Sequence record: MN496307.1
Reading direction: 5' to 3' (one strand)
DNA length: 11,607 nt
Shown piece by piece: positions 2,618 to 3,649 of this stretch (the first letter of the stretch is position 1; each line of letters opens with the position of its first letter). Under the pieces are notes generated by a model. That model saw only the letters and a list, made by a program, of their open reading frames with translations. It was not told the origin of the DNA and searched no databases. The position numbers were made by a program, and so were the translations under genes.

Positions 2618-3649
2618 GGTCTGAGCAGGTAAATATTCATTTATATTATTTTTCAACCACTCCACGTATTTCTTGTAGTGTTCTTTTGCAACACCAAATA
2701 ATGAAACATAATGTTGCGTAGCAACTCTTATCGGTTTTCTACCTTGAATAAAATCTATGACGTCTAACGGAATACCTAATTGGGCCATCTGTGTTGCTAC
2801 AAATTTTCTTATGTATTTGATTTTTACTGCGTCTTTGTATTTTCTCTCAAACTTTGCAATGGGGCTGTGTGTCATTTCTATCTTCCGCAGTGGCGTTATG
2901 TGGAATAAATAAAATGACCCTTTATAGCCTCTGGTCCAACTGATTGGATAATAATGAATATCGCCATCAGTGATATCACGCTCAGGCTCTCTCAATACTT
3001 TTAGTATTTCACTTAATCTAGCCCCTGACTCCAAAGCCAAACGATAAACAGTGTATACGTTTTCGCTATACTCTTTTGCCAGCTGCAGCGTTTGTTTGAT
3101 TTGTTCGATTGTAGGAACGTATAGGTCAGCCTTAGTTGATTTTACTTTAATGATCTTCAACACTTTATCAGCAAACTCCTCACTAATTATCCCGCGTGAA
3201 GCCAAAAACTTAGCAAATAGTCTGTACGCTTTCTGTGAATTTCTGCTATCTGTATATTTGCGCCTTAACGCATTGATGTATTCTTTTGCAGTTTCTTCAG
3301 ATATTCTTCTTTCATTTATCAAATATTCATAAAACGCCTTTAAGTTGCCGTCTGTAGCGTAAGAACGTAAATTGGCAACTACGCCAATTTTACGCCGTTC
3401 TTCTTTTTCAGACGGGCCTCCGGAGCCGGCGGTCCCGGGTTCAAATCCCGGCGGCCGCATAGTGGGGGATTCCCCCACACCCCCATTTTCTTTCAATTTA
3501 ATGTATGTTTCTACGACATCAGTTAAGGGACCTACATAAGTTTCCTTTAACTTACCGTTTATCGTTCTCAGTATATAAACATAATACTTCCCTTTTCTTT
3601 CCCTTATGATTACATCACCATATTTATAACGCGTCTTATCTTTTGTCAT
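2612..3649 (-). CDS. int: SSV-type tyrosine recombinase (D335-like integrase), intact
   Basis: 345 aa beginning [12 protein letters not shown]. Motifs ESGARLSE (catalytic Arg), KYIRK, and IQGRKP...QHY (catalytic Tyr). Internal PPGFEPG is encoded by the antisense tRNA T-arm. Confidence 0.97.
3415..3459 (+). other. attP: copy of a tRNA 3' half inside the integrase gene
   Basis: Anticodon loop CTCCGGA (3418-3424; anticodon CCG), 3' stem GCCGG, variable CGGTC, T-arm CCGGG-TTCAAAT-CCCGG (3435-3451), acceptor strand CGGCCGC plus discriminator A3459. Confidence 0.93.
3462..3494 (+). terminator. Inverted repeat plus pyrimidine tract after the tRNA fragment; likely terminates the reconstituted tRNA transcript
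   Basis: GTGGGGGA-T-TCCCCCAC perfect 8-bp arms (3462-3478), followed by CCCCATTTTCTTTC. Confidence 0.4.

Follow-up and report, generated by a model that had tools for sequence, protein, structure and literature searches.

The attachment site (attP) of the fusellovirus SSV21 appears to be a recombination joint. Its two parts match two different parental types, SSV20-like and SSV22/SSV19-like, with the switch falling within positions 3433-3454, and homologous recombination by the host probably made the joint. Comparison with the sister viruses strongly supports a recombinational origin for this attP.

The window, that is, the whole stretch of DNA analysed, is the complete circular genome of SSV21 (MN496307.1; 11,607 bp), which a BLAST search of a phage collection matched base for base. 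Records give Sulfolobus sp. E5-1 as the host and a hot spring at Naghaso, Philippines, as the source, and SSV20, SSV22 and SSV19 are sister viruses from the same spring; SSV20, SSV21 and SSV22 share host strain and sample. Taxonomy lines in MN496305-MN496308 place SSV19 in Betafusellovirus and SSV20-22 in Alphafusellovirus, whereas a review citing the discovery paper assigns the genera the opposite way (PMC10970483). According to that review, coinfection with SSV20 and SSV22 gave an SSV21-like virus, for which the discoverers credited host recombination (PMC10970483). SSV21 as a recombinant of SSV20 and SSV22 is already published; the chimeric attP may be new.

The attP of SSV21 is a 47-bp tRNA-like segment (3415-3461) inside int. 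On the plus strand, inspection showed 3413-3459 to have the layout of a tRNA 3′ part, with the following elements, of which the Arg and Gly parts are delimited by the longest runs identical to tRNA-Arg(CCG) and tRNA-Gly(CCC) of the genome G298:

3418-3424, plus strand: anticodon loop CTCCGGA, with the anticodon CCG at 3420-3422
3425-3429, plus strand: 3′ strand of the anticodon stem, GCCGG
3430-3434, plus strand: variable loop, CGGTC
3435-3451, plus strand: T arm
3452-3458, plus strand: 3′ strand of the acceptor stem, CGGCCGC
3459, plus strand: discriminator A73
3415-3454, plus strand: Arg part of attP, 40 bp identical to positions 29-68 of tRNA-Arg(CCG), with anticodon loop, variable loop and T arm
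3433-3461, plus strand: Gly part of attP, 29 bp identical to tRNA-Gly(CCC), with T arm, CGGCCGC, A73 and a 2-base 3′ trailer

G298 is a 2.54-Mb genome that carries both matching tRNA genes. We assigned it to the host species because the 3′ flank of its tRNA-Gly gene is identical to the flank of the SSV19 provirus in strain E11-6. Since the attP matches two of its tRNA genes, the resemblance to tRNA is not a chance one. ARAGORN called no tRNA gene in the window; a segment holding nothing but the 3′ part of a tRNA would not be expected to give one. The initial annotation, made from the sequence alone, had described 3413-3459 as an Arg(CCG) loop joined to a Gly-type acceptor end, and both the plus-strand reading and the host tRNA matches confirm this. 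It had also given the end CGGGTCC-G and the Int peptide of SSV1, and the end CGGCCGC-A of the SSV2 type; these are borne out by the records, where SSV1 has the Arg end CGGGTCC-G and SSV2, SSV7 and SSV-Lassen have the Gly end CGGCCGC-A with the loop CTCCCAA.

The sister viruses carry unmixed sites. In SSV20 the attP is purely Arg, identical to the host tRNA-Arg(CCG) over 46 bp, and in SSV22 and SSV19 it is purely Gly, that of SSV22 being identical to the host tRNA-Gly(CCC) over 47 bp; the Gly sites have the same position and reading frame as the sites of SSV20 and SSV21. When the attP sequences are aligned, SSV21 has the SSV20 letter at every differing position up to 3432 (anticodon positions 36-37, variable loop positions 44 and 46) and the SSV22/SSV19 letters from 3455 on (acceptor, discriminator and trailer).

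Directly 3′ of the tRNA-like segment, inspection found one further feature:

3462-3478: palindrome GTGGGGGATTCCCCCAC and a downstream T-rich run

Equivalent palindromes adjoin the attP of SSV1, SSV7, SSV-Lassen and an integrated element of genome G313 that is described below. A scan for bacterial-type terminators did not flag the SSV21 palindrome. Putative roles are that it may end the transcript of a rebuilt tRNA or may bind the integrase.

A host tRNA with the chimeric sequence would give the attP a single source, and a search for one had been proposed in the initial annotation. The exact chimeric 42-mer had no match in genome_contigs and none in metagenome_contigs. Pattern searches covered 325 species genomes of the order and, for the family Sulfolobaceae, 47, and with a degenerate att pattern no tRNA combining an Arg(CCG) loop with a CCGCA end was found in those 325 genomes. 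Scans of contigs with the degenerate pattern gave at least 94 Arg-loop and at least 31 Gly-loop matches, none of them mixed among the matches listed. Over all searches, again among the matches listed, Arg(CCG) loops go with the ends GCCCG, GTCCG or GCCCA, and Gly(CCC) loops with CCGCA. With no full match, we rejected a real host tRNA of this sequence for the genomes that were sampled; judged by these, the SSV21 attP is not the 3′ part of one host tRNA gene that integration would restore. A pattern combining virus flank and att had no match in metagenome_contigs or viral_contigs, and so added no further relatives of SSV19-22, and the pattern searches found no SSV21 provirus in the genomes of the order and family that were searched. 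For 3000-3900 no sequencing run was listed, and the eight that matched 3300-3660 held only the tRNA T arms of other organisms or SSV1-like pieces.

The switch seen in attP is also the switch point of a larger mosaic. In a whole-genome alignment of SSV20, SSV21 and SSV22 the last informative site of SSV20 type is 3432 and the first of SSV22 type is 3455, which gives three intervals:

1170-3432: left parental block, SSV20-type, with the a154-like gene, the DnaA-like gene and IntC; about 680 informative sites
3433-3454: crossover interval of 22 bp, TCCCGGGTTCAAATCCCGGCGG, with the same letters in SSV20, SSV22 and five tRNA genes of the host
3455-6344: right parental block, SSV22/SSV19-type, with the attP acceptor end, IntN, the region upstream of int and variable region 2; about 1100 informative sites

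The 22-bp tract spans the end of the variable loop, the T arm and the first three acceptor bases. It is the only stretch common to both attP types, and in the host genome it is present in the tRNA genes Arg(CCG), Arg(TCG), Arg(GCG), Gly(CCC) and Gly(TCC). Identities taken along the alignment reach 99-100% with the respective parent, against 30-90% with the other; for the left block they are 99-100% to SSV20 against 50-90% to SSV22. The rest of the genome is near-identical in SSV20, SSV21 and SSV22, with a few mosaic SNPs. SSV21 is a recombinant (mosaic) fusellovirus whose blocks have different nearest relatives and meet within 22 bp.

SSV21 also has 13 private SNPs, spread over the whole genome in the alignment:

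651, 1770, 1865, 1869, 3245, 3717, 3978, 4410, 5460, 7870, 8719, 10124 and 10347: SSV21-private differences

These mark SSV21 as a separate lineage. From 3751 to 4250 it is 100% identical to SSV19 and 99.2% identical to SSV22, and this identity together with the private SNPs argues that SSV21 is no in-silico splice of the SSV20 and SSV22 assemblies. Because SSV22 has private SNPs of its own, and SSV21 equals SSV19 over 3751-4250, the SSV20 and SSV22 isolates that were sequenced are not the exact parents. With one exception the SSV21-private differences are transitions, and those private to SSV22 are transitions without exception.

As a separate observation, SSV22 and SSV19 do not differ at all (100% identity) over about 3 kb (window positions 1170-4250, which hold the DnaA-like gene, int, its upstream region and attP), and are only 30-80% identical outside it. 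From its sequence, this shared module looks like a very recent transfer of a whole integration module between fuselloviruses that are otherwise different and live in one spring.

The integrase carries the same joint at the protein level, in these features:

2612-3649, minus strand: int, 345 aa, SSV-type 'suicidal' tyrosine integrase containing attP (ORF, record annotation and Pfam)
3413-3460, minus strand: hybrid linker peptide, Int residues 64-79 (Int alignment)

Pfam places PF07935 at residues 7-73 (E 1.8e-33) and PF16795 at residues 177-331 (E 1.2e-57), and the SSV1 D-335 N-terminal domain and the archaeal phage-integrase catalytic domain are both present. Residues 174-334 match the solved catalytic domain of SSV1 Int (PDB 3UXU, 3VCF and 4DKS). 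Among 18 full-length homologues R211 and R304 are invariant and K243, R281, H313 and Y314 are nearly so; SSV21 Int has the conserved catalytic residues, the tyrosine nucleophile included. The attP (3415-3461, plus strand) lies antisense within the minus-strand int ORF, between IntN and IntC.

The peptide encoded by attP is MR, as in SSV22, followed by PPGFEPG, which is shared, and TAGSGG, as in SSV20. It had been called a hybrid from its letters, and the Int alignment finds it a true hybrid of the SSV22 and SSV20 peptides. IntN (residues 1-63) matches SSV22/SSV19 at 63/63 residues and SSV20 at 62/63, and IntC (residues 80-345) matches SSV20 at 265/266 and SSV22 at 231/266 (87%). The closest relatives of Int(N) are not those of Int(C), as in a hybrid suicidal integrase; the comparison of IntN and IntC relationships proposed in the initial annotation therefore turned out incongruent, and this, like the search for a host tRNA, came out in favour of its reading. 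The IntN protein signal is a thin one, of a single residue, but it is backed by four DNA sites (3518-3536), the acceptor end and the flanking DNA. An AlphaFold2 model built with the 18 full-length homologues has pLDDT below 50 and no secondary structure over residues 56-83, so by the model the hybrid peptide would sit in a linker that connects the N-terminal domain to the helical core-binding domain. Since that linker is disordered, the Int protein should be unaffected by the hybrid peptide. Across the SSV1-type lineage the T-arm peptide PGFEPG does not change, and the residues on either side of it vary from relative to relative. This fits a role of the T arm as a common hinge, although conservation of tRNA alone predicts the same.

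The origin of the joint that we favour runs as follows. An SSV20-like genome would have brought an attP equal to the 3′ part of the host tRNA-Arg(CCG), and an SSV22/SSV19-like genome one equal to the 3′ part of the host tRNA-Gly(CCC). Strand exchange between the two viral genomes would have taken place in the shared 22 bp at 3433-3454, with a second exchange somewhere in the near-identical backbone of structural genes. The product would join the SSV20 IntC, anticodon loop and variable loop to the acceptor end, the IntN and the rightward genes of SSV22/SSV19. The exchange would most likely have been made by the homologous recombination of the host, acting on co-infecting genomes. Homologous recombination in Sulfolobus can use short homology.

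The initial annotation had left open whether the T-arm crossover joined two viruses or a virus and a host tRNA-Gly gene. The part that placed a crossover between viruses in the T arm is supported by the switch within 3433-3454 and the pure parental types; the partner was a virus because sequence of the second viral type runs on for 2.9 kb rightward, and the host option has become the less likely one. That the Gly acceptor end was copied from the host tRNA-Gly(CCC), by gene conversion or illegitimate excision and independently of the right block, we regard as very improbable. The 29 bp at 3433-3461 are indeed identical to the host tRNA-Gly gene, both trailer bases included, and the T-arm tract is common to five host tRNA genes. 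However, SSV22 and SSV19 carry the same 29 bp, SNPs of SSV22/SSV19 type follow at 3518, 3522, 3527 and 3536 and onward for 2.9 kb, and a copy from the host would require a second, independent breakpoint at the same place. Equally hard to credit is an assembly or PCR artefact of a culture holding SSV20 and SSV22. It could draw on the common host strain and sample of SSV20, SSV21 and SSV22, but has to contend with the 13 private SNPs throughout the genome, with a stretch (3751-4250) in which SSV21 is closer to SSV19 than SSV22 is, and with a block structure that, in the review noted above, is the one reported for an isolated virus and reproduced by coinfection (PMC10970483).

A different question is whether the viral integrase, rather than general homologous recombination, made or started the joint. 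Either a site-specific exchange between the attP sites of co-infecting viruses took place at the T stem-loop, or a nick by the integrase at the anticodon loop, 5-30 bp away, was repaired off the other virus. The position of the crossover speaks for such a role. Of the summed length of identical tracts of at least 22 bp, the 22-bp tract makes up 1.4% in the divergent region as a whole and about 5% between the two variable regions, and identical tracts of 56 and 269 bp adjoin it immediately rightward; plain length-proportional homologous recombination would rarely land in so small a tract (an expectation of about 1-5%). The T stem-loop is also a 5-bp inverted repeat around a 7-nt loop, a dyad symmetry like that of a core site, and related integrases, the suicidal ones of the pT26-2 family, are believed to cut in the T loop (PMC8371274; PMC7253208). 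Still, this is a single event examined post hoc, and mosaic SNPs in the backbone show that ordinary recombination is frequent. SSV1 Int, as stated in the initial annotation, cleaves at the borders of the anticodon loop (PMC8371274). An exchange there cannot yield SSV21, whose variable loop, 3′ of the anticodon loop, is still Arg-type, and we rejected it as the origin of the joint. An element with the same type of Int bears on where the exchange occurs in vivo:

G313:C1:657600-665000: integrated element of 6.3 kb with an SSV1-type IntC, in tRNA-Gly(CCC); attL at about 483-560 and attR at about 6790-6860

At attL of this element the full tRNA has the element's TGATC, and at attR the partial copy has the host-type TAATC, the difference being at position 46. 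The element was thus exchanged 5′ of variable-loop position 46, not at the T loop. With this evidence on both sides we think it unlikely that the integrase made or started the joint, and host homologous recombination stays the preferred reading.

In a broader version, co-infecting fuselloviruses would exchange preferentially at the T stem-loop of attP and in dependence on the integrase, which would drive the shuffling of modules and produce half-switched attP intermediates in the change of tRNA targets; this is likewise unlikely. If it were true, SSV21 would be a live, culturable target-switch intermediate; its acceptor end already fits tRNA-Gly, and two loop bases and two variable-loop bases are still Arg-type.

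Integration at tRNA-Gly(CCC) is seen in strain E11-6, where the SSV19 provirus lies at that gene. Besides the provirus the E11-6 chromosome record (CP045706.1; regions 2523511-2544551 and 2390-23163) has a second SSV19 copy, in the former region. This copy is longer than one unit, has an intact int, starts abruptly at SSV19 coordinate 7131 and adjoins 6.5 kb of gene-poor DNA, in which searches by phage BLAST, against Rfam and for tandem repeats found no match and a composition search gave no interpretable result. The copy may have arisen by tandem or concatemeric insertion, or may be an artefact of assembly. Tandem insertions of identical elements have reportedly never been observed with suicidal integrases (PMC7253208).

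Several consequences for integration can be predicted under the favoured origin by host recombination between two viruses. The host tRNA-Arg(CCG) and tRNA-Gly(CCC) share the same anticodon stem and are distinguished by two positions of the loop, so pairing of the overlap should decide the target. Because the overlap and IntC of SSV21 are Arg-type and exchange is at the anticodon loop, its integrase should still target tRNA-Arg(CCG). Upon integration there, viral sequence would replace everything 3′ of the loop, and the tRNA at attL would receive the viral 3′ part. The mispaired acceptor stem that had been foreseen for this case was reproduced in silico and remains a prediction: G1-C72 pairs, G2/G71, A3/C70 and C4/C69 do not (three of the seven acceptor pairs broken), A73 replaces G73, and the minimum-energy fold has no cloverleaf. 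By this modelling the tRNA-Arg rebuilt at attL would probably be non-functional. The host genome also encodes tRNA-Arg(TCG), which may cover the CGG codon, so lysogens with a damaged tRNA-Arg(CCG) might survive. When SSV21 is instead exchanged in silico with tRNA-Gly(CCC), despite two mismatches in the overlap, the acceptor stem of the rebuilt tRNA-Gly is perfect; if that exchange is possible, SSV21 looks like a half-completed target switch. SSV1 without int is viable, and by analogy an episomal life of SSV21 is plausible.

SSV-type integrases carry the attachment site within their own gene, and relatives target many different tRNAs. How a target can change without loss of function has so far been the subject of models only, chiefly for plasmids of Thermococcales. 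With SSV21 there is a concrete, culturable case, and sequences are available for the parental attP types, the host tRNA genes and the half-and-half product. It would allow tests of which part of attP determines the target, whether integration can proceed without restoring a tRNA and at what cost to the host, and whether the integrase promotes exchange at attP; if SSV21 inserts, the host tRNA that it targets should be damaged. Failing all else, it is a clean example of recombination through 22 bp of tRNA-derived homology.

Among known systems, SSV21 belongs to the same integrase lineage as SSV1 and SSV20, with an IntC 70% identical to that of SSV1. Like theirs, its attP lies in the int ORF in the same frame, with the same CTCCGGA loop and the same T arm. 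Unlike theirs, its tRNA part ends in CCGCA and two trailer bases, those of tRNA-Gly(CCC), so the attP cannot restore its tRNA-Arg target. Within the SSV1-type integrase lineage SSV21 is a member that lacks one defining property, an attP restoring a single tRNA. With SSV22 and SSV19 it shares an identical IntN, acceptor end and right flank, but its anticodon loop, variable loop and IntC (87% identity) are SSV20-type, and its overlap departs from tRNA-Gly at two of the seven loop positions. SSV2, SSV7 and SSV-Lassen have the same tRNA-Gly 3′ end CGGCCGC-A and T arm as SSV21, but their integrases are of another lineage (about 40% identity) and read the tRNA segment in another frame. The tRNA-Gly(CCC) segment itself serves as attP in two lineages about 40% identical, that of SSV22/SSV19 and that of SSV2/SSV7/SSV-Lassen, and is translated in different frames.

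The closest parallel for the joint comes from the pT26-2 family of Thermococcales, for which Badel et al. (2020) described hybrid suicidal integrases with differing Int(N) and Int(C) histories joined at att, found that the Gly/Pro-rich peptide encoded by att tolerates change, and proposed that recombination between related elements leads to target switching (PMC7253208). The SSV21 moieties Int(N) and Int(C) are likewise of differing origin and joined at att. In the pT26-2 family the moieties are joined at or around an att of one tRNA type, sometimes with a frameshift, and in integrated elements (PMC7253208). In SSV21, by contrast, the joint is within att itself, where two different tRNAs are fused in frame, and the carrier is an isolated, replicating and culturable fusellovirus for which both parental types and the host targets are sequenced.
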